Part shown: one piece after another, positions 4,209 through 49,194 of the stretch | How the letters are laid out: the number at the start of each line of letters is the position of its first letter | How positions within the stretch are numbered: the first letter of the stretch is position 1 | From: Paramoeba atlantica | Lineage: Eukaryota > Protista > Discosea | DNA length: 64,000 nt | Reading direction: 5' to 3' | Assembly (NCBI GenBank): GCA_977017575.1 | Contig: CDRNVI010000099.1 | Span: 124,001 to 188,000 of the forward strand | The notes under the pieces: generated by a model | The model's database searches: none | The model's input: the letters and a program-made list of their open reading frames with translations, nothing else | What the model was told of the DNA's origin: nothing | Translations under genes and position numbers: made by a program

Positions 4209-4910
4209 TTACATCAGATGGCATCTTTTTGATACACCTTCCTGATCAGTCAACGATTTGATTTTAGTTTTGCTAAAAATTGTCTCGCTGCGTGAAATGA
4301 TTTGCGGTGGCAGCTGACTTGCATTATATGTTCCGCGGAGACCTGGATTATTGCTCATACATAGCCGTGATATAGATTGTGGAAAATCTTCAAGGTCCAA
4401 AACTCTCTCGAAGCAGTTCGCATGTAGATATAATGTCTTTATATTTTTGGGAAGCTCCGCAAAATCTAATATGCCTGAAAACATGTTCACCGAGATATCT
4501 AGATATTCGAGTTTAGTCGGCAATACCTCTAATGGAACTTCACCGAAAAGGTCATAATTTACGTAGAGCTCCAAGGCAATAAGCGTAGAGGGCAAATACT
4601 CCCACCGTGGAATTCCTCGTAGATTAAAAGCTCTAGAAAAATTTGGAATCAAAGCTTGGGTTAATGTTAAGCGTTGCTGTGCCGATGCCATATTACGCCA
4701 ATCGATACCGACCACATTGCCTTTATGATCACATCTCACTCCAAACCATTTACACGCGGGTGTCGATGTGCTATTGAAAATGTCGCTCTGTGGGAGATCA
4801 ACATTTTGAAGAAACTGAACTAACGAATACTCGGGTGGGAGATGCGCATTTAAACGTCCGAGACGAGTCGATGTACTGTCGGAGTTGCGCACAGAGATGA
4901 GAATATTCAT
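4209..4910 (-). CDS. short LRR protein with LRRNT-like cap
   Basis: RLGRLNAHLP start motif, PACKWFGVRC cap, repeats such as LPTKLEYLDISVNMFSG and LPKNIKTLYLHANCF. ATG at 4910 chosen by comparison with paralogues. Confidence 0.85.
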   Translation of the reverse strand: MNILISVRNSDSTSTRLGRLNAHLPPEYSLVQFLQNVDLPQSDIFNSTSTPACKWFGVRCDHKGNVVGIDWRNMASAQQRLTLTQALIPNFSRAFNLRGIPRWEYLPSTLIALELYVNYDLFGEVPLEVLPTKLEYLDISVNMFSGILDFAELPKNIKTLYLHANCFERVLDLEDFPQSISRLCMSNNPGLRGTYNASQLPPQIISRSETIFSKTKIKSLTDQEGVSKRCHLM

Positions 4911-7746: not shown

Positions 7747-8029
7747 TTACATAATGAAACAACCCCCACGCCTTTCTGTGTCAGATTTGATTTTCGTGTC
7801 CCTAATACACAAGGAGCGAGTCCCTACTACAACGCCGCGCGGCAGTGTATTCGTGTTATATGTTCCTCGTAGGTTGACATTGTGATGTAAAAAAAGCTCG
7901 TGGATGCCGCACGGAAGATGCTCAAAGTGTAAAGCCAGTTGAGAGTCATTCCAAGAAAAACTCATGTGAGTCAAGGATCTGGGCATCTCTATGAAATCCA
8001 AGGTTCCTGAAAACGTGTTGAAAGCCATA
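7747..8029 (-). pseudogene. 3' half of LRR gene split by retrotransposon copy A
   Basis: MAFNTFSGTLDF..LHFEHLPCGIHELFL..IRDTKIKS, collinear with the paralogue at 36530-37156; joins 16851..17227 as RLN|MAFN. Confidence 0.85.
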
Positions 8030-9502
8030 TATATGTTATCATGTAGAAAATATTCTACAGAGATTAGACGGTGAATATGGGAGTTCCATATTACGCGCAC
8101 AAAACGCGTTGAAATCACCTGACAGTCAGCGACTCATTCCTCAGAACTAACCTCCATCCACTGTTTGTTCTCGCGGTGCTGGAAAATTATGAAACTTCCC
8201 CGAAGAGCGCTAGTCGTCATATTTCGGCGACACACTGCAACCGCTTCTTCATTTCCCATGAAGAGAGAGTTGAGCGTTCGGGCCGACATATGCAGTTTGC
8301 CTCTCGCTCCCACCTCGAAGACGAGTGGGAATGTGGTAGGATGGTCGAGTTTTCTAGAGTGATATAAACTCGTGTACTTTTCTATTTTGCGCTCGTGCGC
8401 GAACTCAAAGTTCTCCTCCCAAGGGCAGGTAAGTTCTATAATGTATTCTTCTCCGTTAGATAGTTTCACCCATCCGTCAGGACGTAGCTCAGTATCAAGG
8501 TTCGTGAGCCACGCGGTGGTGGAGCGGAAGTGGGGGAGATCGAAGTGACATTGACTAGTGGAGGAGAATCGTTGTACGGAGTTCGCTAATGCCTGTAGTA
8601 CCATGTTATGCCGCAGGGCATACCTCCCTTGTTCGAGTGATTTCCTACAACCAGATAGAATATGCCGCGTAGTTTGTGTCTCGGTGTCACAGATGGGACA
8701 TTTATCGCTCGCATGTGTCAATACGCCCCACCTACGAAGAGACGCCCTGGTTGGGAGCGGCGTCTCGGTAAGCACTGAGGATGTGAACCGCGAAAGTGAT
8801 TCACTCTTAAGGCTACATAGGGCGGCGGCGAAGTCTCTCGCAAGGTCTGCTTCCGTTGCGATTCTGAACCATCGTCCTGCTACGGCAGTACGCCGTTGGA
8901 CGGCTTCCGTGAGGTGTCGCTCGTATTCGCTTCCAAGGAGTCTTCGGACGTTACTATGGCTTGTACTGTGCATATCCGTCGGCGGGCGAATGTATCCTGC
9001 TCTCCTTTTGTTCGCTTCTCGACTGATGCGCTCACATAAAGCGTGCTGGACCTCGGGATCACGCGATTTATCCATTTGTTCCATTGTCTCCACAGTGGAA
9101 AGAAGCCAAAGTTTTGACAGACTCATGAGATTCCAGCCATGCTCTGAATAGAGCAGCTCACTAGGTGCTGATTTCGCTACGTTTAACCATTTCCGAATTT
9201 CGCGTGTGGGGCATCGCTGTAGCCGAAGTACGTAATTGAAGGTAAGGCATGAGTTCACGACGAAGGAATACCGCAGACGAGAGATGATACCGTTATTGTA
9301 TATCCACAGGCGCGCGGGAAGGTCATGTGCGCTGGAAGATATATTACGCAACCAGGCTCGCAGACGGGTTCGTAGTTTTAGAAAGAGTGTCTTGCCTTGT
9401 TGAGCACCGGGTGCGAGCGTCATGCCTAAAAATGTGCTACCATTATCACATATGTGTGGGATAGGTGACGTGCCGATCATGATCTGTGGTCGGCGTGTCA
9501 TA

Positions 9503-10277
9503 CAGGGGTGCAAATCAGATGCTGGGGGGGTCTAAAATTAACAATGTTTGCGCAATTTTGGAAAATGATAGCGCATTCGAGAGCTCTCGCAGAGATCTAT
9601 GTATTTGGATAGGCGGTTTCCCGGGGTGTAAGGGGGTGGTCAACTGAGGAGAAGCCCAAAAAGGTCAAAATGCAAAAAATGAAGGAAAATTTTTGTACGT
9701 TCAATAATTACAACTTTCACCTTTTTGTTTCTACTACTATGTCGAAACGCCGTGGCATGCTGTTTAAAGTGTTTATGAGCATGTCATGACCATCTGTTTT
9801 AATGTAATCAACCGCCGTTTCAATAGAACATCCCCGGTTTCCTCAAATCGCTTAACCCACAACTTAACATGCTGTCGTGGACGCCTTGTCTTTGGCAAGT
9901 GGCACTGTAGGAGTTTGTATTCTCGTAATCTTTAACCAGAAGCATCCTGTGTGAATATTTTGTGTGCCCCGGGGGTTCATGTGATCTATCAGATAAGCCT
10001 TTACTGTTTTGCTTAGAGCGGGATTGCTTTTGCGGCATAATAGTGAGCTGAAAAACAAAAAAACACGGAAAAAACTGCAAAAATTGAAAAATCTGCAAAT
10101 TTTAGGGGGGTAAAAAAGCTTTAAAAAAAATATTTTTTTCGAATTTGTTTTCTTTTAACGTGATAATAGCGCCAAAACATAGATCTCTGCGAGAGCTCTC
10201 GAATGCGCTATTATTTTCCAAAATTGTGCAAACATTGCTAATTTTAGACCCCCCCCAGCATCTGATTTGCACCCCTG
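9503..10277 (-). mobile_element. internally deleted Tc1-like element inserted in the RT of copy A
   Basis: About 100-bp TIRs starting CAGGGGTG, TA duplication (9501-02, 10278-79); removing it restores the DSGYMTRR frame. Retains a transposase N-terminus (MPQK..PGH..RMLLV) homologous to 14296..15423. Confidence 0.9.
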
Positions 10278-12473
10278 TATATCCAGAGTCTTGCGTCATC
10301 GCCATGTGTTGCAGCCGGCATTTTTTCACGTTTAGTTTCATCCCAATATCGCTTAGAACTTTGACGAGTGCGTTTGTAGCATTCTGCATTTCCTGGGGGG
10401 TATTTGTCAGAGTAGTGAGGTCATCTGCGAAGGCTTTTAGAAAAATTTCTTTCGCATTCCACGTGATCCTGTGTTCGGGGCAACTTGAACTGACAAAACG
10501 CAGAATTAGCTCAATCGCCAAGTTGAATAAAATAGGCGAAAGCGTATCTCCCTGCAATACGCCACGACCTATCTCAATAGACTTCGTGAGTCCCTCTGCA
10601 CATTTGTACATTTGTATAGACGCTCGTTCGTACAACGCTTTGATGTAGTTAATGAGGATCGGTGAGACGCGCGCCCATTTTAAGGCCTGAAATAAAATTG
10701 TATGGGGTATGGATCCAAACGCGTTTTTGATATCAAACTGGGCAAGCACGTATTGCCTTTTGTGGCGCCGCTGGTGCTCGAGGATCTCGCAAAGAACCTG
10801 GGTGTGCTTAACTGTCCCATTCATATGCGGCAAGAAGCCTTTTTGTATTGTTGTATCCAGGGCATTGGAATCCAGGGAATGCTGAAGGATACGGTGACTT
10901 AGGATTGAGTGGAAAAGCTTCCCAATGCAGCTAGTCAAGCTTATCGGCCGCTAGTTTTCCATACTTGAGGTGGGGCCCCCTTTGTGGATAAGTCGAGTGA
11001 CCGCAGTTTTCCAGGTTGGAGGGCATACACCAAATTTTAGGACATCATTAAACACCTGTGCCATGTGAGTAAAGAGAGGGGCGCAGCGCTTTAGCAGCGC
11101 GTTCGATACAGTGTCCGAGCCTGGGGCAGCCCCAGAGCGTTTGGATGCGACGGCTGCTGGGATCATGTCTGAGTCAATATCTGACCATTGCATCTCATCA
11201 AGGGGATTTGGTTTCGTAAATTCTGCGGGAGGAATCTTGTGTATCTCTTCTGGTCTAGACATTGAGCCCACAAAGAATCTTTCAACCTCCTGTACAGGAA
11301 CTGTAGGGTAGGACGTCCCAGTTTCTGAGGTAGATGGGTCGACGCGATCTAAGCATTCGCGCGCGGCTGTCCAGGGATTTCGCTGGAATCGCGTAAGAGC
11401 CCACCGTCGACCGATTTCTTTCCTCTGCATACTGGATTCTTCCATGTACTGTTTTAGTGCCTTTTCGGCTTCCTTTATTTCCCCTCGTTGCTTGTTTCTC
11501 GCAGGACCCACCAACCATGAACGTTAACGCACGTTTAAGTTGTCGAACGTGTTGACTGAGTACTTTCACTGTGCGTTCAATGGCTAAGGGTCGTGATTTT
11601 CTTCTGGCTCTGCCAGTTCTGGTCCGTATAAGAAAGCCGTGCGTCGGATCGTTTTCCCGTGCGGCCTCGAATGCAGTTACAGCGAGGATTGCTGAGAGTA
11701 TTTCAGCTTGCGACAGGGCGTCCTCTTTGTTTCGCGCCAGGTGGATGTACGAGTTGCAGCGCTCCTCGATCTTCGCAATAATACTCTCCCACTGTTCCTC
11801 TGTGAAACGGACTAGAACGCGACCTCCATTTATTGTGCGGAATGTTTCGAGTAGGTTCTGCAGTACAGGGAGAGGTCGGGTAGCCGGGATTTGCCGGACA
11901 CGAGGGATGCGCTGCAATATCGTGTGTTCGCAGTTTCCTTCTGGTGGGGGAGGTAAAGGTAAAGGCAGAGGCGTGGGATTTGTTGCGGACTGCACAAGGG
12001 GTAAAGAAGGTGAGGAGCGGCGTACAGAAGGAGAATCATGTTGCGGGGCGTGGACAAGTGGTGCATTCCGCCAAGGCTCAGTATTGAACTCGAGCGATTC
12101 GACGGGTTGGTGTGAACTGGGGGGTAGGTTGATGCGCGTGGAGGGGGCGGTAGTGAAGCTTTTGCGGCGCGTTCCGCATCACCCATTGCAGGGCACAGTA
12201 TATTTCTCGTGGTCCAGCATGTGGCAGAGTACGCTACTTCAGCGACTTTGAGGAGAACTCCTTTCTGGAAGCATTGATGTTTACATGTTGCCTTGTCCTT
12301 ACATTTATGAGCGCAGTTGCGACGAGGCGCTGTTGGGGCAGGGGTGTTGTTGTCATTGCTGGTGTGCAGGTCCGGAGAGGTACGGACGGGTTCGCGGAGT
12401 ACAACCTCCGTGCTAGATTGTATGACACCATTTTTGCAACATCGATGCTTGCACTGAGCTTTGTTGCTACATA

Positions 12474-13180
12474 CAGGGGTGTAAATTTGGATGTGGGGGG
12501 GGTCTAAAATTTGTAAAACTTAGCCAATTTTGGAAAATAATAGCGCATTCGAGAGCTCCCGAACAGGGCTCATGAACGTAACAAGGCCGAACTATGCACA
12601 AGGGGGTATTGCCCCCTAGACAAAGCGCCCCCTAAAGCTATTTGCAACTTTCTAAAACAATAGCAAATATCGAAAAAAAAAATTATAATTGCTATTATCG
12701 TCGATTAATCCCAATCACAATACAGCATCGCTTTCGAAAGCTCTTCATGGCATTTTCATGGGCCTTGAAACGCTGCTTCGATCGCAATGATCAAATCTGC
12801 ACTATTCCGAGGGGCTCAACCATTTTTGGAGTCGCCCACTATGGAACATGATTTTTTAGCGCGAAAAAGATTGTGTTGTTTCGTAATCAGCAACAAGAAC
12901 CATGCACCAGCTTGCTTTTACGTGCCCAGGCGAAGAATAAACCCTTTCGTAGTCTTTGTGTTCGGGTGATGGCCCACAACCCCATCTTTGTAGCATTAAT
13001 CAGGGGAGAAATCAGAAAAACTGTGAAAAATGCAAAATTTTCCCTCCCAAAAAACTAAGTTTTTTTACGTGCACTCGAAATTCTAATTAACGCAGATGCC
13101 GTACATGCACGTTCATGAGCCCAGTTCGAGAGCTCTCGAATGCGCTATAATTTTCCAAAATTGGCCAAGTTTTACAAAAT
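12474..13180 (-). mobile_element. deleted Tc1-like element with truncated right TIR
   Basis: TA|CAGGGGTGTAAATTTGG left end; internal pieces homologous to both ends of the 14296 transposase; right TIR breaks off at about 13180. Confidence 0.85.
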
Positions 13181-14087
13181 AAAAACGTTAGCGCACGTTT
13201 AAGTTGTCGAACGTGTTGACTGAGTACTTTCACTGTGCGTTCAATGGCTAATGGTCGTGAGTTTCTTCGGGCTCTGCCAGTTCTGGTCCGTATAAGAAAG
13301 CCGTGCGTCGGATCGTTTTCCCGTGCGGCCTCGAATGCAGTTACAGCGAGGATTGCTGAGAGTATTTCAGCTTGCGACAGGGCGTCCTCTTTGTTTCGCG
13401 CCAGGTGGATATACGAGTTGCAGCGTTCCTCGATCTTCGCAACCATACTCTCCCACTGTTCCTCTGTGAAACGGACTAGAACGCGACCTCCATTTATTGT
13501 GCGGAATGTTTCGAGTAGGTTCTGCAGTTCAGGGAGAGGTCGGGTAGCCGGGACTTGCCGGGCACGAGGGATGCGCTGCAATATCGTGTGTTCGCAGTTT
13601 CCTTCTGGTGGGGGAGGTAAAGGTAAGGGCAGAGGCGTGGGATCTGTTGCGGACTGCACAAGGGGTAAAGAAGGTGAGGAGCGGCGTACAGAAGGGGAAT
13701 CGTGTTGTGGGGCGTGGACAAGTGGTGCATTCCGCCAGGGCTCAGTATTGGACTCGAGCGATTCGAGGGGTTGGTGTGAACTGGGGGGTAGGTTGTTGCG
13801 CGTGGAGGGGGCGGTAGTGAAGCTTTTGCGGCGCGTTCCGCATCACCCATTGCAGGGCACAGTATATTTCTCGTGGTCCAGCATTTGGCAGAGTACGCTA
13901 CTTCAGCGACTTTGAGGAGAACTCCTTTCTGGCAGCATTGATGTTTACATGTTGCCTTGTCCTTACATTTATGAGCGCAGTTGCGACGAGGCGCTGTTGG
14001 GGCAGGGGTGTTGTTGTCATTGCTGGTGTGCAGGTCTGGAGAGGTACGGACGGGTTCGCGGAGTACAACCTCCTTTGTTGCTACATA
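13181..14087 (-). repeat. tandem duplicate of part of retrotransposon A (homologous to about 11520-12473)
   Basis: ORFs 13235..13915 and 11571..12251 are near-identical; the second copy lacks about 50 bp before the Tc1 insertion site. Confidence 0.9.
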
Positions 14088-15640
14088 CAGGGGTGTAAAT
14101 TTGGATGTGGGGGGGGTCTAAATTTTGTAAAACTTGGTCAATTTTGGAAAATAATAGCGCATTCGAGAGCTCTCGAACAGGGCTCATGAACGTAACAAGG
14201 CCGAACTAGGCACAAAGGGGTATTGCCCCCTCGACAAAGAGCCCCCAAACGCTATTTGCAACTTTCTAAAGCACGGGAAAAAATAGAAAAAAAAATTAAT
14301 AATTGCAGTTTCCGCCGTTCTTTTCAATCACAATACGGCATCGCTTACGAAAGCTCTTCATAGCGTTTTCAGAGGCTATAGAATGTGTCGTTTGAAGATC
14401 TTGAAACGCTGCTTCGATCGCAATGAGCAAATCTGTACGATTTCTAGGGGCCAAACCATTTTTGAAATTGTCCATTATGGACCATAAATTTTCAACGGGC
14501 ATGAGATCAGGTGATTTTGCTGGCCAAGGAAGAACAGTAATTCCTGTCTCTTGAAAGCTTGTCCTGGCCAGATTGTGCACCGTACAGTTATCCATTGCAA
14601 TAACGCTAGAACGGTGCCGCTTAAGGTAAGAAATTAACCCTCCACGCTTCTTCATGGCTTCATCAAAAATAGCGCCCGTCACTGTACCTCGGTTTCCTTG
14701 AGAACGAACAGAAGGAAAAACGTGAAGGTGAAACCCATGCTTAAGGCTCGCTGCCATCCAAACCATAACACCATTCCCCCCATGCCATGCATCCAATTCA
14801 CCTTGCTGCTCCTTGGGAGCGTGAGTTTTGCGGCAGAGGTACGTGATGTGCCCCCCACTCTTCCCACAAGTAAATTTTTTTTCATCCATCCAAATGATAT
14901 TGGACAGTTCCGCGTCACTCCACGTTAGCATTTCTTCACAGAAACGTACTCGTTTCTCTTTATGCACTGAGGTAAGTGCAGGGGATTTCCGGACTGTGCG
15001 CAAAACGATGCCATGTGATTTCATGTGGGTCGTCAAAGTTTGACGAGAGCAAGTGAACCCAAGATTTTCCATTAACCGGTGGAGCTCACTCCAGCTCCTG
15101 ATGCCATAGGGTTGATCTCGAACACCCTCGTCTATAGCTTTCAAAGCAGCCTCACGTAGTTCAGGTGTCACAGCGATGTTCGTTGGGGCGTGTTTCTGGT
15201 TCTTGGAGTCTACTTCTCCAGTATCACGATAGCGCTCCACCCAGCGCTTCACAGTAGCTTCATGAACTTGAAAATTGCGTGCGGTTAGGGAAAAAGACTG
15301 TGTTGCTTCGTAATCGGCAACAAGAAGCATGCGCCAGGTTGCTTTTATGTGCCCAGGCGAGGAATAAGCCCTTTCGGAGTGCTTATGTTTCGGAGATCGT
15401 CCACAATCCCGTCGTTGTGGCATGAATAAGGGCAAAAAACAGAAAAATTGTGAAAATTGCAGGATTTCGTCTTCCAAAAAACTAAGTTTTTTTGTGTGCA
15501 TTCGAAAATCTAATTAACACGGATACGGTATATGCACGTTCATGAGCCCTGTTCGAGATCTCTCGAATGCGCTATTATTTTCCAAAAATAGCCAAATTTT
15601 ACAAATTTTAGATCCCCCCACATCCAAATTTACACCCCTG
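14088..15640 (-). mobile_element. apparently intact Tc1-like transposon
   Basis: About 105-bp TIRs (CAGGGGTGTAAATTTGGATG...CATGAACGT), TA TSD at 14086-87 and 15641-42, uninterrupted transposase ORF. Confidence 0.95.
14296..15423 (-). CDS. Tc1/IS630-family transposase (DD32E)
   Basis: MPQRR start at 15423; HTH-like region (LTARNFQVHEATVKRWV); WMDE, MDN and WPAKSPDLMPVE motifs. Confidence 0.9.
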   Translation of the reverse strand: MPQRRDCGRSPKHKHSERAYSSPGHIKATWRMLLVADYEATQSFSLTARNFQVHEATVKRWVERYRDTGEVDSKNQKHAPTNIAVTPELREAALKAIDEGVRDQPYGIRSWSELHRLMENLGFTCSRQTLTTHMKSHGIVLRTVRKSPALTSVHKEKRVRFCEEMLTWSDAELSNIIWMDEKKFTCGKSGGHITYLCRKTHAPKEQQGELDAWHGGNGVMVWMAASLKHGFHLHVFPSVRSQGNRGTVTGAIFDEAMKKRGGLISYLKRHRSSVIAMDNCTVHNLARTSFQETGITVLPWPAKSPDLMPVENLWSIMDNFKNGLAPRNRTDLLIAIEAAFQDLQTTHSIASENAMKSFRKRCRIVIEKNGGNCNY

Positions 15641-16810
15641 TATGCGCCGACAGGGGCGATAATTGACTTCATTGGTTGATGTTTGTGTGTGGTGTGCGGC
15701 GTCATCCATGTATTCTAGTGAGGGCAGATTTGCGGTCGGGAGCTCCGGATCCCTGACCTCTTCGAAGTGTCCGATGTCTGGTGTGGTATGCTGATCGGTG
15801 TCTATGGATAAGTCTGCTGGTAGTGGACTACTTGCTCGAGCTATGGGTGGTTCCACGAGGGGTAGCACTGGTTGAGGACTACTTTGGGCATCTGTAATGG
15901 GGACCCCCACTTTGCAACACTTGTGCAGACAATTTCTTTTGTCGCGGCATGTGTGTTTGCACGGTCTTCTGTGAGAAGTAAGTGAGGGTTCCATAGGGGC
16001 AACGACCTCCGGAGAGGGAAGAGACACGCTAGGCGGAAGAGATCCCTCGTGTCGTACTTTGCAACATGCGTGGAGACACGATGTTTTGTCCCGGCATTTA
16101 TGAGCGCATGGGGCACGTGGTTCGGAAGCGTGTTTTGAGGCATATGATGGCGGTGACACCTTGTAAGAGTCATCTCGGATCCTATAGGGTGCGCCGTAGG
16201 TGATCTCTGGGTGACCCCGTAGTAGTTCAATGGGTTGTATTTTTCGAGTTACGTGTGTGATTTGGAATTTTCGTAATCCTGGGATGTCACTACCACATAG
16301 TTTCTTTGTGACCGCTTTACCGAGCGCGTTCGAAGAGGAGTACACTGCGTTAAGCTGCATGAACGAATCCATGTAGGCGGAACTCCACCTGGCGTGACAA
16401 AACGTGCGACTTCGGTTTCCCGTTTCTTGGTATTTTAGGTGTTCACATGCGTTGTTTTCAATGACATCTTGAATTGTACACGATGTGATTATCAGACCAT
16501 CACTTCTTTTGCTTTCCGACTTCAAGGATTTGCCGATCGAGACTTCAACCATGTGGACACTCGAGAAGAACTCTCGTTCTGTGAGGGCAATGGCTGCGGC
16601 ATGCGTGTCTGGGAAATATGACCATGTGACGCTGTCTGAGGGGCGGATTTTGACGGGCATCGCTCGACTTTGGATGAAGTGAAAGCTCTGGGGATGTCGC
16701 TGCGCGCTGACAGGTCCTCCAGGGGGGCCGTCGTGTGCGATGGGAGCCGGTGAGGTGACATTGGAGGCCATGCTTCGGAAGATAAAGTTAGTACAAAATT
16801 GAAAATAATT

Positions 16811-16836
16811 CAACAAGTTACAGAAACTGTATCTTT
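16811..16836 (-). other. spliced-leader-like relic at 5' end of copy A
   Basis: AAAGATACAGTTTCTGTAACTTGTTG; contains most of the ACAGTTTCTGTAC core conserved in kinetoplastid/diplonemid SL exons. Confidence 0.8.
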
Positions 16837-16850
16837 ATGAGACGCTATCT

Positions 16851-17227
16851 TTAAGACGCTGCAGATCCCTGGGTAATGTGTCTAACCTGACTTCGCCCAT
16901 GAGATCGTTTGAGTAAAGTTCCAACGCAAGTACGGTTACGAGCAAATGTTCCCAACGTAGCGTACCTCGTAGATTGCCTCCCCGGATAATGTGAGAGTAT
17001 GTTTCGCATGCCGAGTTCATATCGTGCCAATCGATCCTTTCAACATTTTGTGCATCATTGCAACGTACTCCGTACCACTCACACGCTGGAGTCAAAGTGG
17101 TTTTGAAATTACTACTCGACGGAAGTGAAACGTTTTCAAGAAATTGAAGTAACAGAATTTCAGCTGGAAGACGTGCATTCATACGCCCCAGACGTAGCGG
17201 TGTCGTATCCGCGTTTCGCACAAACAT
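16851..17227 (-). pseudogene. 5' half of LRR gene split by copy A
   Basis: MFVRNADTTPLRLGRMNARLP..TPACEWYGVRC..LPRDLQRL; near-identical in design to 36530..37156. Confidence 0.85.
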
Positions 17228-18012
17228 TACGTAGGTGTGCAAGGAAAAGGAATAACGTTTTTCGTAAAAAGGAACAATAATTTTTGAAAACTCTGAACAA
17301 TAATCTGAATGTAACGACCAAAACAAATTGTATTGAATGACAACTGAACGCATATTGAAACATTCTCGTGCACCTAATAGTGACCTGCACGAAATATAAC
17401 TTGTTCTATAATACATGTATCCTAAAAAACGAATTGTAGACCACAAATATAGAATTAAATCTTAATAAGATATAAAAATTATATAAAAGACTTATAATTT
17501 TCAGAAAGAAAAGAAAAATATAAGGGTAAAAGAAAACATCAAATCGATTAGAGGATTGATTGTCTAAATCTTCTGGAATGTTCTAAAATTTCTTCCTCTT
17601 CAGAATCTTCTTTCTCGTCTTCCGCAAAATGAAAAATCAGTTCTTCTTCGGCGTACAGTATATAAATAGAATATAGAAACAAACTGACAGTGATGTTATC
17701 ACTGTAAATTAAATTTGTAACTAATTTCCAGCAAAAAGATAAAGCACAAAAAATATGTACACGTATTGTTTTCATAGATAGTGCTTGAACCTCAATAATA
17801 GTACCATAATAAATTAGTTTTTGTACAGTTTTTGTAGTTTTACGGACCTCTGAATTATTGTGTGATATAATCAGACAAAAGTTTTTTTCTTCGAAAAAAA
17901 TAGAAATGCGCAAAAAAAGTAGTTTGTGTATAGCGCGCCAAAAAGTAACATATTTACAGTTTCTGAAGTTTTTGAACCCGTGATCGAAAGCCGGCGGTAC
18001 ATTATCACTGAG

Positions 18013-19952: not shown

Positions 19953-22900
19953 ATGTGTTTATTCAATGCAGAATCATGTTTAGATCTGCAGAGGTAAATT
20001 TCTACCTATGCTACGGTCGCATACGACGACCCCGCATAGGCTGTTTTACTAGCCTAGCCGCCCCCTTTCCAGTCGGGTGATTCCCGGTTTAGCCAAATAA
20101 CAAAGCTACTACGAATTGCTTCGCGTATGGCTTCAAGTTGGCATTCCGTGGACAGCCCTTTGTCACTCCCAAAAAGGCGGGCTACCTGCCGAAGAGAGGA
20201 AGCCGGCAATCCTCTTACACCCACCTCCATACACAGCAGATGTGTGTTCGGGTGATCCATCCTGCGGCGATGCAATATATTCTGATATTTTTCCGTTTTG
20301 CGGCAGTGTGCCTCCGCGATGTTGTCTTCCCAGGGTACGGTCAGTTCAACGATAAATTCAGTTCCATCGTGAAGCCTGACCAGGCCATCCGGACGCAGAG
20401 TGGTTTCTAGGGCTGCCCACCAACTTGGGAGGTTACGGAGGCCCTCGAGGTCGAATGAGGCCCAGGAGGTGTTGGGGGAGCCGACGATCGCGTTCGCAAG
20501 GACGCTCAACACTCTGTCATGTCGATACGTGTAGCGTCCTTGGTCTAAGGATGTCCTGCAACCTGAGAGCAGGTGCCTTAAGGTTTCGGGTGCTGAGTTG
20601 CAGATACGGCAAGACATACTATTTGCACCATTCTTCCCCCATGTTCTGAGCATGGTCCGGGTAGGAAGTGGGGCTTGGACCATCACATGTGTAGCGAATC
20701 TGCTCAGTGAAGTGCTCCTAAGGCCGTTAATGGCAGCTGCAAAATCTTTCGCCTGATCTTCCTCCGTGTTCGTGTCCCACCACTGTATGGCAACCGTGGT
20801 GCGGCGTCGCAGAGCGTTAATCATACGCTCCTCGTTCAGGTCAATGAGAGTTTTCCTGGCGCGAGATCGGTCGTTCAAGCAGTGCGTTATGTGAGTTGCG
20901 GGCCGTATTTGTCCTTTCAAGCGTCTCTCCTCTTCTTCCCGTATTTTGTTCCGAAGCACAGCTGCGGCAGCCGGATCTTTGGATTTCTTTAACTGGCACA
21001 TAAGGTCTGCAGTACATTCATGCCACAGTTGCGACAGGCTCCTCAGTCCCCAGCCGCGCGATGAGTAAATTGCTTCGGGACTAGAGCCACGCGCCACGTT
21101 AATCCAACGCCGCAGGAAGTTGGTACAGAGTTTCTGGAGTCGGAGGACAAAGTTCATAGTGATGCACGGGTGGATCGTAAGCGAGAAGCGCAAGCGGGAG
21201 ATAATGGCATGCTGATATATCCATAGTCGCGAAGGGAGGTCGTGGGCGCTCTTATCGATATTTCTGAGCCATGAATTAATGAGAGGACGTAGCTTCATGA
21301 ACAGCGCACGGGACTGTTGTGCTCCAGGGGCGATGGTCATGCCCAGAAAGGTGCTACCTGCATCACAGATTTGGGGAATGGGAATGTGATTGATCAGAAT
21401 TTGTGGACGGCGTGTCATGTAACCTGGGTGTTCATCGTCCGGTCGCACGGCCATGCATTGTACCCTACTCTTTTTCACGTTTATAGATAAACCTATTTTG
21501 CGGAGGATTGAGTATAGGGCTCCTAGTGCGACTCCTTCGGGTTGCTGGTGAGGACCGTGAGATCGTCAGCGTAGGCCTTTATAAAGCATTTCGCATTGCC
21601 TGGCAGATCGAGTCCGTACGCGGGAAAGTTAAGTGTCATATAACGCAGTACTACTTCCATGACGATAAGGAATATAGACGGGGAGAGGGTGTCGCCTTGG
21701 AGTACCCCACGTTGCACAGGAATTGTAGAGGAGAGACCTTCATAACACTTTATTTGCGTAGACGCTCCGTTATATAAACTACTGATGTACCCGAGGAGAG
21801 TCGGGGAGATCTTGGCCCATTGCATCGCCTCAAATATAACATTGTGTGGGACTGAACCGAATGCGTTGGATAGATCCAGTTGGGCTAAGCAGTATTGGAG
21901 CTTGTTCTTTCTGTAGTGCTGCAAGATTGCATCCAGCGTCTGAGTGTGTTCCAGTGTCCCGTTGATGGCCGGTAGGAAACCCTTTTGGATTGATGGATCA
22001 ATTACTGCTGCCTCGACCAGATGGCGGTTTATTTTGCGACTTATGATCGAATGGAGAAGCTTAGCTAGAACACTGATGAGACTGATGGGGCGCCAGTTTT
22101 GGGGTTGATCGTGAGCTCCATTTTTATGAATTAGGCGGGTAACAGAGCATTTCCAGGAAGGTGGGCAAGTGCGATACTTGAGCAACGCGTTGAAGACTGT
22201 AGCGATGTGTGAGTGTACGCTGTGACACCGTTTTAGGATGGTATACGTGATGGTGTCTTGACCTGGGGCACTACTATTCCTTTTCGAGATTAGAGCGTCG
22301 GATATTTCGGTCGGGGTCAGCTCTTCCCATGACATGTCGACAAGAGGACGGGTCCCAAGCGAGTCAGACGGAGGAATGTGGTATTCCTCTGAAGGAGCAG
22401 AAAGTGTATCACCAAAGTGCTTTTCCACGCTGTGCACATCGCATGTAGGATAGGAGGCTGGGGCTTCAAGACCGATAGGTTTGTCCAATGTTTCGCTAGC
22501 GGCGGTCCATGGGTTTCTGTTAAAGCGTTTCAGTGCCCGGCGTTGTTCGAGTGTTTGCCGCTGTGCGGTGGCCTCCGCATGATAAACCCTTTCACCTTTT
22601 TTGGTTTCCTTGATCGTTCGTTTTAAGGCGTTCCTGTCTGCCTTTCCATGTGTATAGCGTAGTCTTGTCTGCAGTTCTTTTAGGTGCCGGGAGAAGGACG
22701 AGGCTATTTTTTCGCTTTCCAAGGGTCTGCATCGGGTCTTTGCGTGACCTTTCTTTGTGCGGATTAAAAAGCCTTTCGTGGGATTCACGTCGCGAGCAAC
22801 CTCGTAGGTAGAGACAGATAGTATGGAGCTCAGGAGTTCGGCGTTCCTAACGGCGGAATCTATGTCTTGTTCAGGAGTGAGTAATGCACTACACCTTTTG

Positions 22901-25576
22901 AGAGCCTTGGTCTCAACGTCGTGCCACTGTGCGTCCGTTAAGTTGATACATATCTTTCCCCCTTGGATGTACCTGGCTGTTCGGAGTAGGTAATCGAGAT
23001 CCTGTTCTTTATACTCCTGCAGGTCTGGTGGAACCGCCGAGCGAGGTACTTTGGATTCCTGGGCAGAGCTGGTCTCGGCGGCAGTGGAACCTGCAGTTGG
23101 AGGAGCAGCGGGACCGAAGACTTTACAGCAACGATGAGCACACCCGAGTTTGTCGCGGCAGGTGTGGCGGCAGGGTTGTGCAAAGGATTGCAAAGAGGGT
23201 ACACGACTGGGTGGGTCTGCTATGCGATATGCTGGAAGCTCCGGAATAGCTTCTAAGACCGGCGGAGTTTCGTCGATGGGTGTGTGTCGATGTAGGGTTA
23301 TCACATGATCTGCAAGCCCGGGAATTTCGGAGCCGTTTAGTCTCTTAAGAACGGCTTTACTGAGAGTACCCGGAGAGGAATAGTAATCTGAAAGTTTTAG
23401 GGCTGCATCCTGGTACAGAGATACCCAACTGGAGTGGCGCGAAGACTTGTCCGGGCTTCCGACTTTGTGAATTGTAATGAAATCGCACGCCCCATGGTCC
23501 ATCAGTTCTTCTACGGAACATCCTCTTACTATGATGTCGTGCGTGGGGTTGCCAGAGTTCAGCGCCTTCGAAATGGCTGCCTGCGCTCCCTGCAGGGAGC
23601 TAATCCTGCTGCGTGTGATTTGACTTTCGCAGGCAGCTCGTACGTCCGGAAAATATAACCATTCTTGGGCACTTGCTAGACGAAGTTTCAGAGGCTTTGA
23701 TCGGGATTGTATAAAATGTAGGCATTGTTTCCCTTTCTCTGTCGAGCGACGTCTTTCTACAGGGACCCCCGAATTCCCAGAAGGCACGTCGTGAGGGACC
23801 TTCTCGAATACCCATTCCGGAACTTCGTCGTCCGCAGTGCAGAGAGGGAACGGTGGTTCTGTCAAGAGTCCTTCTGAGTCGTCGGTATGGTGGGGTGACT
23901 TTATACGATTAATAAGTAGTTTCTCTACGCCGCGGCGTGTGGGACTAGGCGTGAACGAGACGTTCCAGGACTCCGGCACTATCGAAAGATTCTGTGGCGG
24001 CGATAAAGGGGCAGGGAGGTACGGGACTTTCTCTGCTTTGGAGTTGTCGGAAGTGTCCACCCCTGCGTCGTGCTCGGGCGTGCTGCTGGGATGGTCGCGA
24101 TATGGTTCATCAGTTATCCGGTCTGGGGGGTGCTTTTCGGTATCAGAGGAAGAGATACGTGCGGGTGACGATGTTGTGATGCCAGGGGTAAGCCCTCTTT
24201 TGCAGCAAAGGTGGCCACACGTGGTTTTGTCCTTACAGGGATGTTTACATGGTAGATTGTATGGGTTCTGAGGCTCTGGTTCGGGCTGTCGAGCGCTGAG
24301 GCGCAATGTCGGTCCTTCCTGCAGCTTTTCTATAGCGAATTCGGGAGGTTCTCGCTTGGGAGATAGTTGGGACCCTCGGTTTACGGTCTTGGGAGTCATC
24401 TTTCTGAGAGGCGGTGGTTTCGCTCGTGCTTCCGGGGGAGGGATGCCAAGGAGGCCTTTACATAATTCATACGCAAGATTGATAGCTGTTGAGGAGATAG
24501 TATGTTGTTTTCCTTCCGGAGGAGAAGAAGGGGATTTCCGAAAGGTGGGCACCTTACTTGCTTCACGCTGATCAGCTCTGTTGGCATGCGTTGTAGCAGG
24601 GTTGTCGCTGTTTGATCTTGCGATTCCTGGGGCAATCAATTTTCTCTTCGCCGACATTTCTCCCTCGACGTGTTTCCTTGAGCGTTCGTAGTGGTTGGAG
24701 CCCTCGCTTGTGGATCTGCCGCTGGGTGAAAACACTTCCGTGTTCGAGGAGTTCTGCGCAGTTTGGGGTTTGCCCGCACATTGAAATATGGGCTTGGTCA
24801 AGTGGCGCAGTACTTTCACCATAAAGCCCCCAGAGTCTCCTGCCAGATTTTGACTCCCATTGTCGCGCGTACTGCTTTGTGGATCTAGTCTAGGTGCACT
24901 ACCGGCGCTCGTACAAGTGGTGTGGAGGTGACGTTTACAACAGGGGTGCCCGCAGTTCGCCTTATCCTTGCAGATATGTTTGCACGGGGCGATAGGTTCA
25001 GGTACATCCTTTACTACTTCAGATGATGGGGCTTCAGAGGACATTGTGTTTGTTTCCGTCCTCCTCGTTACATCGGTAACAGTATTCCCTTGGGATACAT
25101 GTGTGGTACTATCTTCGGGAACACAGGTAGGAAGAAGATGTCGTTTACAACATGGGTGGCCGCACAGACTCTTGTCTTTGCAGGGATGCTTGCATTGTGA
25201 AATGTTAAGGGGCTGAGTGGACGGCGGATTCGGCGCAGTCTTGCAGCAGGGATGGCCGCATTTTTTTTTTGCTCCTTACAAGTATGTTTACATCGCCGGG
25301 TCGTATTTATTGCGGTTTCCTTCTTTTCAGTGTTTGTTTTCAGTGAACCTCCCATAGGAGCTTTGGGGCTGACTCGGTAGGAGTCTGCATGTTGAGCTGC
25401 ATGTTCCTTGGCCTCGCGTTCAGCACCTGTCAGAGAGGTGGCGGATCGGCTAGTTACGTTGCCTAGTCTCTTATGAGAGTCCTGCAACGCCTGTGAGATT
25501 TCCCCACTTCTGGCATATGGCGAGGTCATGAAGGGTCGTAAACGTAGGGGAAAATAAAGACAACAAGGTACAGAAA
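19953..25576 (-). mobile_element. RLE-type non-LTR retrotransposon copy C (second subfamily, full length, two frameshifts)
   Basis: Partial SL relic 25561-76; ATG at 25529; five CxHxC..CxHxCCK fingers; RT (WRPISL, QGDTLSP, YADD); CRIC..H..C, RH, RPDG..VELTVPWE. Frameshifts at about 25265 (A-run) and about 21520. Confidence 0.9.
25561..25576 (-). other. partial SL-like relic at 5' end of copy C
   Basis: TTTCTGTACCTTGTTG, about 30 nt upstream of the element ATG; identical to the 3' 16 nt of the relic at 33918. Confidence 0.7.
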
Positions 25577-25642
25577 TGTGGTATAAAAAAACCAGGTACA
25601 TCACGAAGATCGAGACCTCCCGTAAACTTGTTACAGGAAATA
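25577..25642 (-). pseudogene. LRR fragment stranded between copies B and C
   Basis: Encodes ISCNKFTGGLDLRDVP; continues the LRR frame broken at 30397 (VIN|ISCN). Confidence 0.75.
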
Positions 25643-28600
25643 TATTGCATCATACAGGTAATCCTGCAGAGATTTATGTGGTGAAAACGCGCACAAAACG
25701 CGTTTTAGTCACCTGTTTATATCCAGCGTCACCAAGAACGTTCTCCTCCATCCAATTTTTGTCATTGCGGTTTTGATATACTATGAAGCTCCCTCTCAGA
25801 GCCTTCACGGTCATATTGCGCCGGCACTCAGCCACCAGCTCATCATTACCCATAAATAGAGAGTTCAGAGTTCGACCAGCACTGCTTATTTTTCCTCTCG
25901 CTCCGACTTCGAAAACGAGTAGAAAAGTACTCGGGTTTGTGAGCTTGCGGGAATAGTAGAGATTTGTGTACTTGGCAGTTTTTCGTTCGTGTGCGTAGAC
26001 AAAATTTTCCTCCCAGGGGCACGTCAATTCTATAATATACTCCTCCCCGTTGGACAGTTTCACCCACCCATCCGGTCGCAGCTCGGTGTCGAGTTCCGTG
26101 AGCCACGGAGGGGTAGAGCGAAAGTGAGGGAGGTCAAAGTGATATAGACTGGTCCCTTGGAATTTCTGCACAGAGTTTGCGAGGGCTTGTAGCACCATGT
26201 TATGTCGCAGAGTATATCGTCCTTGCTCGAGTGCTTTTCTACACTCGGAGAGAATATGTCGCGCAGTTTGCGTTTCAGTATCGCAGATGGGACACTTGTC
26301 GCTTGTTTGTGTCGATACGCCCCATTTGCGGAGAGACACTCTAGTGGGGAGTGGCGTTTCTGTGAGTACGGAAGCCGTAAATCGTGATAGCGATTCGCTT
26401 TTGAGATTACATAGGGCGGCAGCGAAGTCCCTCGCGAGGTCTGCTTCCGTCGCTACGCGGAACCATCTTCCCGCAACTGAAGTGCGCCTTTGCACGGTTT
26501 CCGAAAGATGCCTCTCATATTCACTGTCGGGAAGTCGTCGTACGTTATTGTGAGTTGAACCGAGTATGTCAGTCGGCGGACGAATGTACCACGCTTTTCT
26601 CTTGTTTTCTTCTCTCCTGATGCGTTCGCGCAGGGCGTGCTGGACATCGGGATCGCGTGATTTCTCCATTTGTTCCGCGGCGCTCGCGGTTGAAAGAAGC
26701 CATAGTTTGGATAAGCTCACGAGGTTCCAACCATGCTCGGAATACAACAGTTCGCTTGTCGCGGATTTTGCTACATTTAACCATTTTCTGATTTCATTTG
26801 TAGCGCATCGCTGGAGGCGCAGAACGTGGTTAAAAGTCAGACATGAATTGACAACAAAAGAGTAGCGAAGGCGGGAGATAATACCATTATTGTATATCCA
26901 TAGTCGGGCGGGTAGGTCGTGGGCGCTGGAAGATATGTTGCGTAACCAGGTACGGAGTCGATTGCGTAGCTTTAGGAACAGAATTTTACCATGCTGGGCA
27001 CCAGATGCGAGAGTCATACCCAGGAATGTGCTACCATTATCGCATATTTGAGGAATAGGTGTTGCGTCAATCATTATCTGCGGTCGTCTTGTCATGTAGC
27101 CTGAGTCTTGAGTCATTGCCATGTGTTGAATCCGACATTTCTTTGCGTTCAATTTCATTCCGATATCGCCTAGAACTTTGACCAGTACGTTCGTGGCAAT
27201 TTGCATTTCCTTTGGTGTGTTCGTGAGTATACTGAGGTCGTCAGCAAAGGCCTTCAGAATGGTTTCCTTTCCATCCCAAGTGATTCCGTACTGTCGGCAA
27301 CTTGAACGGATGAAGCGAAGAATCAATTCCATTGCCAAGTTGAATAAGATCGGCGACAGTGTATCTCCTTGTAATACTCCACGGCCGATCTCGATCGACT
27401 TCGTAAGGCCTTCAGCACACTTGATTTGAATAGATGCTCCTTTGTACAGCGCGCTGATATAGTTAATTAGAATTGGGGAGACACGGGCCCATTTTAGGGA
27501 TTGCAACAGTACTGCGTGGGGGATAGATCCGAAAGCGTTCTTGATATCGAACTGTGCCAGTAAGTATTGCCGTTTGTGACGTCGTTGGTGTTCAAGGAGC
27601 TCGCATAAGACTTGTGTATGCTCGACGGTCCCATTCATGTGTGGTAGAAATCCTTTTTGTACTGATGTATCGAGCGCATGAGAATCCAGGGAATGTTGAA
27701 GGATTCGGTGGCTCAGCATTGAATGGAAAAGTTTCCCTATGCAACTAGTTAAGCTTATCGGTCGCCAATTCTCCATAGTTGATGTAGGACCTCCTTTGTG
27801 TATGAGGCGAGTTACGGCAGATTTCCAGGTGGGGGGGCAAATCCCGAATTTAAGGATATCATTGAATACTTGAGCGATGTGGACAAAGATAGGGCTACAA
27901 CGCTTGAGCAGAGCGTTAGATACAGTGTCTGATCCAGGAGCAGCGCCCGAGCGCTTGGAAGATACAGCAGATGCTATCATTTCGGCGTCAATATCCGACC
28001 ATGGCATGTCGATGTCAGGCCGTGGTCCCAAGAACTCGGCGGGGGGTATGCTGTGATTCTCTTCAGGTTTGTAGATTTGATTCAGGTCTGTAGATTGGCA
28101 TCCTCCACGTACAACTTCAACGCTTTCTCTGCTTCCTTAATTTCTCCTCGCTGCTTGTTTCTCGCGGCCCCTTCATGAAGGTAAGTGCACGTTTGAGTTG
28201 ACGAATATGTGTGCGAAGCCTCTTCGTGGTACGTTCCATGGCCAAGGGCCGTGAGTTCCTTCTGGCTCTGCCAGCTCTGGTTCGCAGGAGAAAGCCGTGT
28301 GACGGGTCGCTCTCCCGTGCGGCTTCAAAGACGGTTACGGCGAGGATCGCGGATAATGTTTTAGCTTGAGACAGGGCATCCTCATCGTTTCGCGCTGGGT
28401 GCACGTACAAGTTGCAACGTTCCTCAATTTTCGCAATAACATTGCCCCACTGTTCCTCTGTAAAACGTACCAGAACTCGTCCTCCCGTTATTGTGTCAAA
28501 TGTTTCGAGAAGATTCTGCAGGTCAGGAATGGGCTGAATGGTTGGGGCTGGGGCGTGCTGGGCTCGAGGGATCCTCTGCAGTATCGTGCGTCTGCGATTT

Positions 28601-30396
28601 ACTTCCGGTGGGGGAGGTAAAGGTAAAGGCAAAGGCGCGAGTTCTGCTACGGATTCCATACGTGGTACAGAAGGTGAGGAATCCGGTTGCGTCTGGTGGG
28701 AAATGTCGTAGAGGGCTGGACAGTGGACTCGTGCGGGGCAGGGAGTTGGTGCGAACTGGTAGGCGGGGTGCCACGACTGGGGCGGGAGGTTCCGAAGCTT
28801 GTGAAGAAGCTGTAGCGCGTTCGGCATCACCAAGCGCAGGGAATAGAATATTTTTCGCCGTCCAGCTTATGGTAGAGTATGCGATTTCGCCAGCTTTGAG
28901 GAGAACTCCTTTTTGACAACATGAATGCTTACATTTAGTTTTGTCTTTACATTTATGTGCGCAATTACGGCGAGGGCCTGATTCAGGGTGGATATTGCCA
29001 TCTCTACTAACATGAGCTTCCGGGGAAGTGCGTGTATGAGAGAGCTCGTGGTTTACAGCCTGCGTACCGCTCAAGTTTCCTGTCTTGGATGGCCAGCTAG
29101 GATGATTCTGTGATGATATTATGCTAGCATCGGCAGGAGATGTCCTCGTAAACAAATTCCTAAATGACCATATTCGATTCTGACTGTTTTCTTCGATGAT
29201 CATGACCCCTGTCTTGCAACAATGGTGTTTGCACTGAGTTTTATTGCTGCATATGTGCCGACACGGGCGATAGTTGGCCGTGTTTGCTGATATTACGGCG
29301 GACGACGGTGGATTACCGGTTGGCAGTTCCTCATACTGGGCCTCTTCGCTCGGTATGGCATCTGTCGAGACTTGCGGATCGGTTTCTATCGATGTGGCTA
29401 CTGTCGGACTATGTGACCGTGTTAGTGGTGACTCCCCGAGGTGCCGTTCTGGTCGAGGATTATCAGTAGCACCCGTGATGAGGACTCCTATTTTGCAGCA
29501 CTGGTGCAAACAATTTGTCTTGTCGCGGCACGTATGCTTACAGGGCCTTCTGTCGGGAGCTAGTGAACTGTCTATAGCCACGGCTTCCGAAGAGGGAAGA
29601 GGGACGCTAGGACGCACAGACCATTCGGGTTTCACTTTTCAACATACGTGAAGGCATGCTGCTTTGTCCCGGCATTTATGGGCACAAGGGATACTTGGTT
29701 TAGTGGGCGGTAGTTTTGACACCTTGACGGGAGCATCACGGATTCTATATGGCGCGTCGTATGTGACCTCCGGGCAACGTTGGAGTTGTTCAGTGGGTTG
29801 GGCCTTACGGGTCACGTGTGATATGCGGAATCGTCGTAAGCCTGGCACGTCACCGCCGCGCAATTTCTTTGTGACGGCTTTGCCAAGCGCGTTCGAGGAG
29901 GAGTATTCTGTGTCAAGCTGCATGTCGGGGTCTGTATAAGCAGAGCTCCAGCTCGTGTGATGAAATGTGCGACTAAGGTTTCCAATTTCATGGTACTTAA
30001 CGTACTCGCATGCGTCGTTCTCGATGACATCTTGAGTGGTACACGTTTGTTCTATCAGACCATCGCTCCTTTTGCTTCCCGACTTCAGGGTTTTTCCGAG
30101 GGAAGCTTCTGCTGTGTGCGTGCTTGAGAAAAACTCTCGTTCGGTAAGGGTGATGGCTGCGGCGTGCGTGTCGGGAAAATAGGACCATGAAACGCTATCA
30201 GAGGGGCGGATCTTCACTGGCACCGCACGACTTTGGACGAAGTGAAAGTTCTGGGGGTGTCGCTGCGCTCTGACAGGTCCTCGAGGGAGGCCGTCGTGCG
30301 CGTGGGGAGCTGGGGGTGTGACATTGGAGACCATGCTCCGAAAGATAAGTTTAGTACAAAGTTAATAAATCAACAAAGTACAGAAACTGTATCTTT
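25643..30396 (-). mobile_element. RLE-type non-LTR retrotransposon copy B (full length, frameshifted)
   Basis: SL relic 30371-96; ATG at 30334; four zinc fingers in 28523-29680; RT plus RLE ORF 25674..28031; 3' end TATGATGCAATATAT. Confidence 0.92.
30371..30396 (-). other. spliced-leader-like relic at 5' end of copy B
   Basis: AAAGATACAGTTTCTGTACTTTGTTG, 36 nt upstream of the element ATG. Confidence 0.85.
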
Positions 30397-30873
30397 TGAT
30401 CACTCCAATATCAGTTGGTAAATGTGTCAAAACTAACCCTCCAGTAAACATGTTTCCACTGACATCCAAGTGGTATAGTCTAGCCGGCAAGTTAACTAGG
30501 CTCAAACCCCCCGTAAATGTGTTATTCGTTGCTTTAAAATATTCAATGTATTCGTGAAGTTTGAGCATACCATTGAATCGATTATCTGAAAAATCAGCTT
30601 CCTGAAGTCCTTGTTCCCAAAACAAATTCTCCAGATCCAAAGTTCCTACGAGGGCGTTCTCCTGAACTAAAAGGCGTGTAAGACTGTTCGGCAAATTATT
30701 GAGGAGTAATTTCCCCGAAAATGATTGCAGGAGGCATCGAATATCTCCATGTGAACCGGAAGAAAACGAAGGTCCAAGTCCAGCTCGGAGTAATCTTTGC
30801 TTGAATACGTCATGTGCGGAATTCGCGGCGTATAAGAAACTGTACAGCCCGTGAACGCGTTAGAACTTAAATA
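30397..30873 (-). pseudogene. middle part of a shattered LRR gene
   Basis: YLSSNAFTG..LDLRFLPVHMEIFDASCNHF..LPNSLTRLLVQENALVG..LPARLYHLDVSGNMFTG..LPTDIGVI. Confidence 0.8.
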
Positions 30874-31276
30874 TTTTGTTTATCATGCGCTCTTTGGCGC
30901 AGAGATAATCCCCTTAATGCGACGGCCGAAATCATCGGCACATAATCCGCCCACAACGGATGTCGCCAAAGGGGGTTCGACGCGGACTCTGTCGGTAGAG
31001 AGGTCCAGGCAACTCGCCTCTCTTTACGCAGCCGGAGGGGCGTACTGCAACCGACTCGGTCCCAGTCGGTAGAGGTGGTCCAGGCAACTCACCACCTCTT
31101 TACGCAGCCGGAGGGGCGCACTGCAACCGACCGCTGCCTCGCGATAATGCGAGGCAGAGTCACGCCCAGTGGTCCTCAAGGGAGGCCACCATGGCGCATA
31201 GCTCCCGGGAAGAGATAGGCGCGAGAAGAAGAAAGCCGGGGAGGGAAGAAAACTCACTCAAGGAGTGAGCCGGGGA

Positions 31277-33768: not shown

Positions 33769-33917
33769 AGCCGGGGAGGGGTGAAAAGTCGGAAGTACGT
33801 CCCCTACTTCCACGACAAAGAGGGACAGTTCCCGCTAGCCGTCAGCCGGAAACGGGCATTAAAAGGGAAAATGTATGCCCGTTTCCGGGAAAAGAAAGGA
33901 AGGGCTAGCAAAATGTA

Positions 33918-33943
33918 CAACAAGGTACAGAAACTGTATCTTT
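33918..33943 (-). other. spliced-leader-like relic
   Basis: AAAGATACAGTTTCTGTACCTTGTTG. Confidence 0.85.
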
Positions 33944-34226
33944 ATAAATGCCTTAGATAATTGGGTAACTCGTTCAAATTTATTTTGCCTGAAAAGCAAC
34001 TTTTTCTCAAATTCAATGAGTGTAGATCCGTTGGGAGGCTACCCAAGTCTAATCCGCCTTCGAATTGGTTACTTTCCAGATTGATTACGTTCAGCGTCAA
34101 AGGAAAGTGGGAAACATTTATAGTACTCGTAAATTTGTTAAAACCAATAGCAAGATACTCTAGACCCGGAGGCAAATTATTTAAGATATTGGATCCAGAA
34201 AAGCAGTTTGCTGTTGTGGCGTACAC
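33944..34226 (-). pseudogene. upstream part of the shattered LRR gene
   Basis: LPPGLEYLAIGFNKFTS, FPLTLNVINLESNQFEG, LPTDLHSLNLRKSCFSG, LPNYLRHL. Confidence 0.85.
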
Positions 34227-46257: not shown

Positions 46258-46312
46258 GGGGGACAGGGGAGGGGGATGGGGGTGTGGAAGGGAATAGAGA
46301 GGGGAGGAAGAG

Positions 46313-49191
<2,879 letters not shown>

Positions 49192-49194
49192 GAA

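Follow-up and report, generated by a model that had tools for sequence, protein, structure and literature searches.

Spliced-leader relics at the 5′ ends of different retroelements

The 64-kb window, i.e. the whole stretch of DNA that was analysed, contains LRR genes interrupted by retroelements, namely the LINE copies A, B and C and a mini-element referred to here as the SINE, together with a further, 5′-truncated LINE, copy D (Table 1). Copies A, B and C encode RT and zf-RVT domains. The order of motifs met in RLE-LINEs is found in ORF2 of copy B (RVT_1, then CPIC...H....C, then RPDG...IELT...KTAKY), whose closest named relatives by sequence are R2 proteins. Copies A and B belong to one family with homologous UTRs and 74% identity over the first kb, and only a 250-nt stretch with 68% identity is common to copy C and this family. 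The 3′ end of copy A is ...ATGATAACATATATAT and the tail of copy B is ...ATGATGCAATATAT, both without poly(A); the ends of A, B, D and the SINE all have the form ...ATGAT..(TA)n, and neither a poly(A) tail nor a target-site duplication is evident for A, B, D or the SINE. A search of the window with Rfam returned no family at the gathering score, HDV-type ribozymes included, which is a weak negative.

Table 1. Features of the window discussed in the text; positions are those of the forward strand.
Feature	Positions	Strand	Remarks
LINE copy A, R2-type, decayed	8027-16838	-	internal duplications; nested Tc1/mariner-type transposon
SL relic of LINE copy A	16811-16838	-	28 nt, SL nt 11-38; 1 mismatch (TAAC for TACC); UTR from 16810
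5′-junction duplication, copy A	16837-16852	-	AAAGAT + 10 nt near-copy of upstream LRR flank
LRR gene sequence upstream of copy A	16839-17446	-	insertion point directly after LPxxLxxL
LINE copy C, separate R2-type family	19953-25576	-	RT in ORF 21523-25044, zf-RVT in ORF 20054-21478; 3′ end approximate
SL relic of LINE copy C	25561-25576	-	16 nt, SL nt 23-38
LINE copy B	25640-30396	-	4.76 kb; ORF2 25674-28031 with RT, CCHC motif and RLE nuclease motif
SL relic of LINE copy B	30371-30396	-	26-27 nt; 1 mismatch (CT for CC)
SINE, ~575 nt, in two pieces (33945-33769, 31278-30871)	30871-33945	-	complete; 97.8% identical to L058
DNA transposon splitting the SINE	31279-33768		2.49 kb; ORF 31552-32466 (+), IS1595-type DDE domain
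SL relic of the SINE	33918-33945	-	28 nt
Copy D, 5′-truncated B-like LINE	50960-55161	+	95-97.5% identical to B; no relic left
Fifth SL relic, decayed	57381-57415	+	at least 30 nt; A-rich run before; 37-nt UTR + 88-codon ORF after

Further insertions were noted in the window. Tc1/mariner-type transposase ORFs (HTH_Tnp_Tc3_2 and DDE_3) occur at 14296-15501, inside copy A, and at 1572-2279 (minus strand), and about 10 bp of the SINE are duplicated at both junctions of the transposon that splits it. Near where copy D ends, 163 nt matching the 3′ terminus of LINE C (55657-55819, 98.8% identical) probably represent a heavily 5′-truncated insertion of that element.

Copies A, B and C and the SINE are all inserted right after the LPxxLxxL of an LRR repeat and in the orientation of the gene, and the same position and orientation are found for three copies elsewhere in the assembly (L022, L058 and L097). 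Uninterrupted paralogous LRR sites are present in the window itself, at about 36790 and 18282. The co-orientation of A, B and C with the LRR genes, already pointed out in the initial annotation, is thus explained by site- and orientation-specific insertion, and co-transcription of the elements with these genes is plausible.

What these elements have in common is their head. The initial annotation had described a 26-mer heading copies A and B and the mini-element, with its last 16 nt heading copy C, and a motif search of the window confirmed this with exact copies, all on the minus strand, at 16811-16836, 30371-30396 and 33918-33943, the 16 nt of copy C lying at 25561-25576. The search further revealed a decayed copy with three mismatches on the plus strand (57390-57415), an older relic missing from that set of four; no match to the 26-mer was obtained in 100 shuffles of the window. 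Read on the minus strand, each copy ends in TTGTTG, in line with the earlier statement that the relic always ends at TTG, and the first ATG follows at 39 nt (A), 36 nt (B) and 31 nt (C), within the 30-40 nt originally estimated. The claim that different 5′ UTRs follow the relic holds for C and for the mini-element and fails for A versus B, whose UTRs are homologous. In copy A and in the mini-element, the AT that precedes this sequence in the host spliced leader (SL) is also present, extending the relic to 28 nt (SL nt 11-38). A junction structure like the duplication at the 5′ end of copy A was found at L067/L068 and L075/L078.

The 26-mer corresponds to the 3′-terminal part of the host SL exon. 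Indeed, tandem arrays of SL RNA and 5S rRNA genes with a period of ~2.56 kb were found on four other contigs (C97, C107, C11 and C74), in which the SL exon is 38 nt long, starts with AACT, has the 26-mer as its last 26 nt and is directly followed by GTATGAG, i.e. by a GT donor. Each array unit has one 5S rRNA gene, a constant sequence upstream of the SL exon and a hairpin-rich tail after GTATGAG, and the units sampled are uninterrupted; this layout matches one reported for bodonid SL arrays, going by a title cited in PMC2621209. The exact SL string was not found in the literature searched. Besides the arrays, there is a dispersed retrocopy of a whole SL RNA (L033, G000:C6:25588-28621), comprising the exon and a 67-nt intron and ending in ...GGGGCTT followed by A's, an end that likely marks the 3′ end of the SL RNA.

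Evidence at the RNA level was sought by aligning public runs to the beta-tubulin locus (L085). In run X1 the genes of this locus are covered and the intergenic region 4459-4612 has no coverage, and one contig of this run carries 22 unaligned letters, GATACAGTTTCTGTACCTTGTT (then G), directly before position 4633. The junction falls at an AG acceptor (4632-4633) located 35 nt upstream of the beta-tubulin ATG, and a contig of run X5 terminates there too. Since the genome has no SL at this junction, the leader of the beta-tubulin contig was added after transcription. These data support the post-transcriptional joining of the SL to the host beta-tubulin mRNA at an AG acceptor, the leader-bearing RNA being a single transcript-like contig from run X1, for which no run type is recorded. 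The host SL therefore does not differ from the 26-mer, whose sequence is carried by both the array exon and the beta-tubulin contig. In comparisons with named proteins, the beta-tubulin reached 91% identity to trypanosomatids and 89% to Perkinsela, and an identical one was not found; a search for the paraflagellar-rod family was uninformative, as no genome, controls included, had a match.

The 5′ side on which the relics lie, and their surroundings, bear on the idea that the elements are insertions of the CRE/SLACS type into SL RNA genes, the 26-mer being flanking gene sequence. The elements are RLE LINEs, and a relic of 28 nt has precisely the length of the exon part downstream of the SLACS/CZAR site (nt 11/12 of a 39-nt exon; PMC5814959), but the relic is on the 5′ side of the element, with a UTR and no SL intron after it, each relic is preceded by LRR coding sequence, and the true SL arrays are on other contigs. 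Contradicted as it is by the flanks in the window, this explanation is extremely improbable.

The relics extend far beyond the window. The genomic count of relics and of downstream classes that the initial annotation had proposed yielded, in the 45.7-Mb assembly to which the window belongs, 963 exact 16-mers and 880 hits to a 20-mer of the motif, against none for the reversed controls, with unrelated UTRs after the TTG (dozens of distinct ones among the loci inspected). In all loci read with their flanks, the 3′ boundary of the relic is the last base of the exon, and diverse UTRs and ORFs follow. The carriers inspected are nearly all multi-copy families of mobile elements (LINEs, the SINE and others). 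The 5′ boundary, on the other hand, is ragged: among 100 relics listed together with the 19 nt before them, 57 extend to SL nt 4 or beyond, 7 begin within nt 5-8, 11 have a length of 26-29 nt, 4 of 22-25 nt and 21 of 16-18 nt (15 of these exactly 16), these figures and the other censuses reported here being counts over listed samples. A-runs directly precede many of the full-length relics. A boundary fixed at the splice donor on the 3′ side and ragged on the 5′ side is what the copying of trans-spliced RNA predicts, and a conserved internal motif of the elements would not yield this pattern, which favours the relic reading. Together with the leader of the beta-tubulin contig, the ragged boundary also speaks against a fixed element sequence that is never added post-transcriptionally.

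We therefore consider, with a probability of roughly 0.8, that the 26-28-nt head of the elements is a DNA copy of the end of the SL, reverse-transcribed from trans-spliced RNA. The core of the initial annotation, namely SL-derived heads copied back from trans-spliced RNA, is thereby retained: the relic is SL exon, with a fixed 3′ and a variable 5′ boundary. In the scheme that we propose, the elements would be co-transcribed with the LRR genes and then trans-spliced, so that the retroelement RNA would obtain a normal mRNA 5′ end, the SL being joined at its exon end to the 5′ UTR of the element. Reverse transcription would return the leader to DNA, and the relic would be shortened from its 5′ side by variable amounts; the cut at SL nt 10/11 common to the A/B LINEs and the SINE would be made at reverse transcription or integration. 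Two sets of data run counter to this reading. First, the hallmarks of retrocopies (poly(A), clear target-site duplications) are incomplete in the elements of the window. Second, the relics of the A/B family and of the close C-family copies are all truncated (20 of 20 and 6 of 6, respectively), and one copy, L068, starts at the upstream duplicated AAGAT with no SL sequence after it.

The second point deserves attention, as it bears on whether a leader is added anew in each cycle. The 20 A/B copies in the assembly that retain their 5′ region have the relic cut at about SL nt 11-16, with the exception of one cut at nt 23, and none of them has a full leader or is a relic-less copy with an AG acceptor. 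In addition, the A/B relic keeps its canonical sequence in subfamilies with up to 26% divergence, which also counts in favour of a leader copied from trans-spliced RNA. The SINE family, with about 400 candidate copies in the genome, behaves similarly, the relic starting at about SL nt 11-16 in 13 of 13 copies taken without regard to the relic. It is thus possible, though rather unlikely in our view, that the 28-mer of the A/B LINEs and of the SINE was once a relic and is now a heritable, selected 5′ module, the RNA starting or being processed at SL nt 11 (e.g. by an internal start) and acquiring no new leader per cycle. This would account for the uniform start of the A/B and random SINE copies whatever their flank, for the lack of a relic-less source copy, for the invariance of the relic across diverged subfamilies and for L068, whose start at the upstream AAGAT repeat suggests that the 5′ end is set by local sequence or that the head is heritable. 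It is opposed by SINE copies with longer relics, of 33 nt in L058, which belongs to the subfamily of the window copy itself, and of 36-37 nt in L044 and L054; the RNA of the SINE has hence carried more leader than the 28 nt seen in the window. Furthermore, the A/B copy L080 reads 28-mer, then 16-mer, then UTR, which requires a second addition of leader, and the relics of the six close C-family copies, none of which has a full SL, vary from 7 to 24 nt.

Nested relics, which the initial annotation had suggested looking for, are frequent: the pattern CCTTGTTG, 0-19 nt, CCTTGTTG has 112 matches in the genome versus 2 in the control. Among 100 listed nests, the sequence behind the leader is a 10-mer in 40, starting after CTG and not after AG, a 16-mer starting right after the CAG of the relic in 13, and a 22-mer starting after AAG in 2. 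At least 15 families have the 10-mer nest and at least 8 have that with the 16-mer, and triple nests occur with leader, 16-mer, 10-mer and UTR in this order. The earlier suggestion that the two AG dinucleotides of the relic could serve as acceptors in daughter copies fits the 16-mer and 22-mer nests; it accounts neither for the commonest nest, the 10-mer, nor for the uniform cut of the A/B family near nt 11, and the nests support such a use of internal AGs as a minor route, comparable to that of dinoflagellates (PMC3229502). Two other sources of the 10-mer were rejected: the assembly has no variant SL gene with a duplicated 10-mer, and a general stop hot-spot at nt 28 is not apparent, as single 10-mers (~8 per 100, for a control rate of 9.5%) occur at chance level, so that the 10-mer form is specific to nests. 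The favoured starts of relics all lie just 3′ of G10, G16, G22 and G28, G residues that recur every 6 nt along the leader.

The same junctions prompt consideration of template switching, in which the reverse transcriptase would jump from the element RNA to an SL-bearing RNA or to a free SL exon, the element RNA itself not having to be trans-spliced. Such jumps are exemplified by U6-L1 chimeras. The junction duplications and the partial leaders in odd order (L007, L010, L067 and copy A) show that template jumps do occur, and the nested boundaries just 3′ of a G, the commonest of which shares TG with the last two bases of the SL, fit a jump guided by microhomology. However, the joint between SL and UTR is at one fixed UTR position in each family, which suggests a defined acceptor, and a jump to the SL RNA would bring in the intron, a sequence encountered only in the whole-SL-RNA retrocopy mentioned above. 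Trans-splicing is moreover the simpler explanation, being the route by which every host mRNA obtains its SL, and as the origin of the heads we regard template switching as quite unlikely.

Some loci suggest that copying and leader addition may take more complex forms. At L001-L004 (G000:C1:8252-26549), L035, L039 and L045-L048, the first 30-34 nt of the 5′ UTR are present on both sides of the relic, and one family with such a repeated UTR forms a head-to-tail array with a period of 5,093 bp; this arrangement suggests that terminally redundant RNAs were copied as concatemers. At L088 (G000:C11:179157-179327), which belongs to the C family, a 24-nt relic is preceded by 18 nt of foreign sequence and, further up, by a relic of ~25 nt, as if a leader had been added a second time, upstream of the flank of an older insertion.

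The SINE raises questions of its own. Its 3′ end, ...ATCTCTGCGCC...ATGATCATAACC, and that of the A/B family, ...ATCTCTGCAGG...ATGATGCAATATAT, have short motifs in common, and in most SINE copies the 28-nt head is followed by GT and a structured RNA. The mini-element is nevertheless not a copy of an SL RNA gene, the true intron (GTATGAGAAGC...) differing from the sequence after the SINE relic. One could imagine that the leader piece is a working part of a LINE/SINE partnership specific to LRR genes, the 28-nt head defining the 5′ end of the element and the leader being recycled between cell and parasite rather than persisting as a passive scar; SINE transcripts may then act as short alternative leader donors. 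We hold this proposal to be speculative and doubtful.

Returning to heads copied from trans-spliced RNA, the closest precedent is provided by dinoflagellates, in whose genes SL relics are established marks of retroposition (PMC5585692, PMC6050394) and for which SL relics and mRNA recycling were reported by Slamovits and Keeling, as described in passages of PMC3229502. In both situations, retroposed sequences start with a host SL copied into DNA, and nested truncated relics follow a full leader, some of them, according to the same passages of PMC3229502, starting right after an AG of the leader. They differ in that the dinoflagellate relics are on ordinary host genes, whereas nearly all those inspected here are on families of mobile elements, and in the kinetoplastid-type 38-nt SL of the present host. 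Two further differences are that the most frequent nest here (10 nt) has no AG before its start and that single relics frequently show fixed cut points.

Among mobile elements, those of the CRE clade of trypanosomatids (SLACS, CZAR, CRE1/2) target the SL RNA gene, with insertion at nt 11/12 (PMC5814959, PMC12278014). The elements of the window resemble them as site-specific LINEs of the RLE type tied to the SL, with RT, zinc-finger and RLE motifs, a likeness at the level of features. In contrast, CRE elements have poly(A) tails and those of the window a short TA-rich tail, and the latter are inserted in LRR coding repeats and not in the SL exon, the leader being a copied 5′ tag. The R2 elements of animals have 28S rDNA as their target, and their 5′ end is freed by an HDV-like ribozyme. 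Shared with R2 are insertion at one site and in one orientation of a multi-copy host gene, an arrangement that would permit co-transcription, and variable 5′ junctions with small duplications; the elements of the window differ by the SL at their 5′ end, by a protein-coding repeat as target and by the lack of a detected ribozyme, a weak negative as stated above. Like L1Tc/ingi with Pr77, they appear as LINEs in need of a usable 5′ end within polycistronic transcription, the former being kinetoplastid elements; L1Tc has an internal promoter and a ribozyme, and its RNA is unspliced and without SL (PMC1874656, PMC3185411), while the elements of the window carry the SL. TcTREZO of Trypanosoma cruzi, described as a retroelement specific for the MASP multigene family of surface proteins (passages of PMC5814959), likewise targets a surface-protein multigene family; it is another type of element, and the passages of PMC5814959 on it mention no SL relic at its 5′ end.

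In the literature searched, outside which much of the subscription literature lies, no description of SL relics borne by kinetoplastid or diplonemid mobile elements was found, and SL-headed retroelements as a genome-wide habit are apparently undescribed. The relics indicate that, in a kinetoplastid-like organism, many families of retroelements obtain their capped mRNA 5′ end through the trans-splicing of the cell. Alongside the solutions of L1Tc/ingi, R2 and SLACS, the last of which relies on a captured SL promoter, the use of the SL would be another way to live within polycistronic units. The relics furthermore constitute a built-in marker of retroposition, with about a thousand dated events, well suited to the study of reverse-transcriptase stops, of the formation of 5′ junctions and of repeated leader addition. 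Finally, the specialisation of R2-type elements for a coding repeat within a surface-type LRR family bears on the breakage and reshuffling of such families.

Two observations concern coding sequences. In an abundant relic-headed family (L006, L015 and L021), an ORF begins right after the relic, with the N-terminal motif GSWDQF..N.HLI...STY; Pfam searches with ten N-terminal relic-headed ORFs gave only sub-threshold matches to LsmAD (ataxin-2), with E values of 9e-5 to 3e-3. In the window, the region 45800-49300 has an extreme GC skew (up to 0.78) and a low GC content, and contains an ORF of 1061 codons on the minus strand (46061-49246) with no Pfam match.
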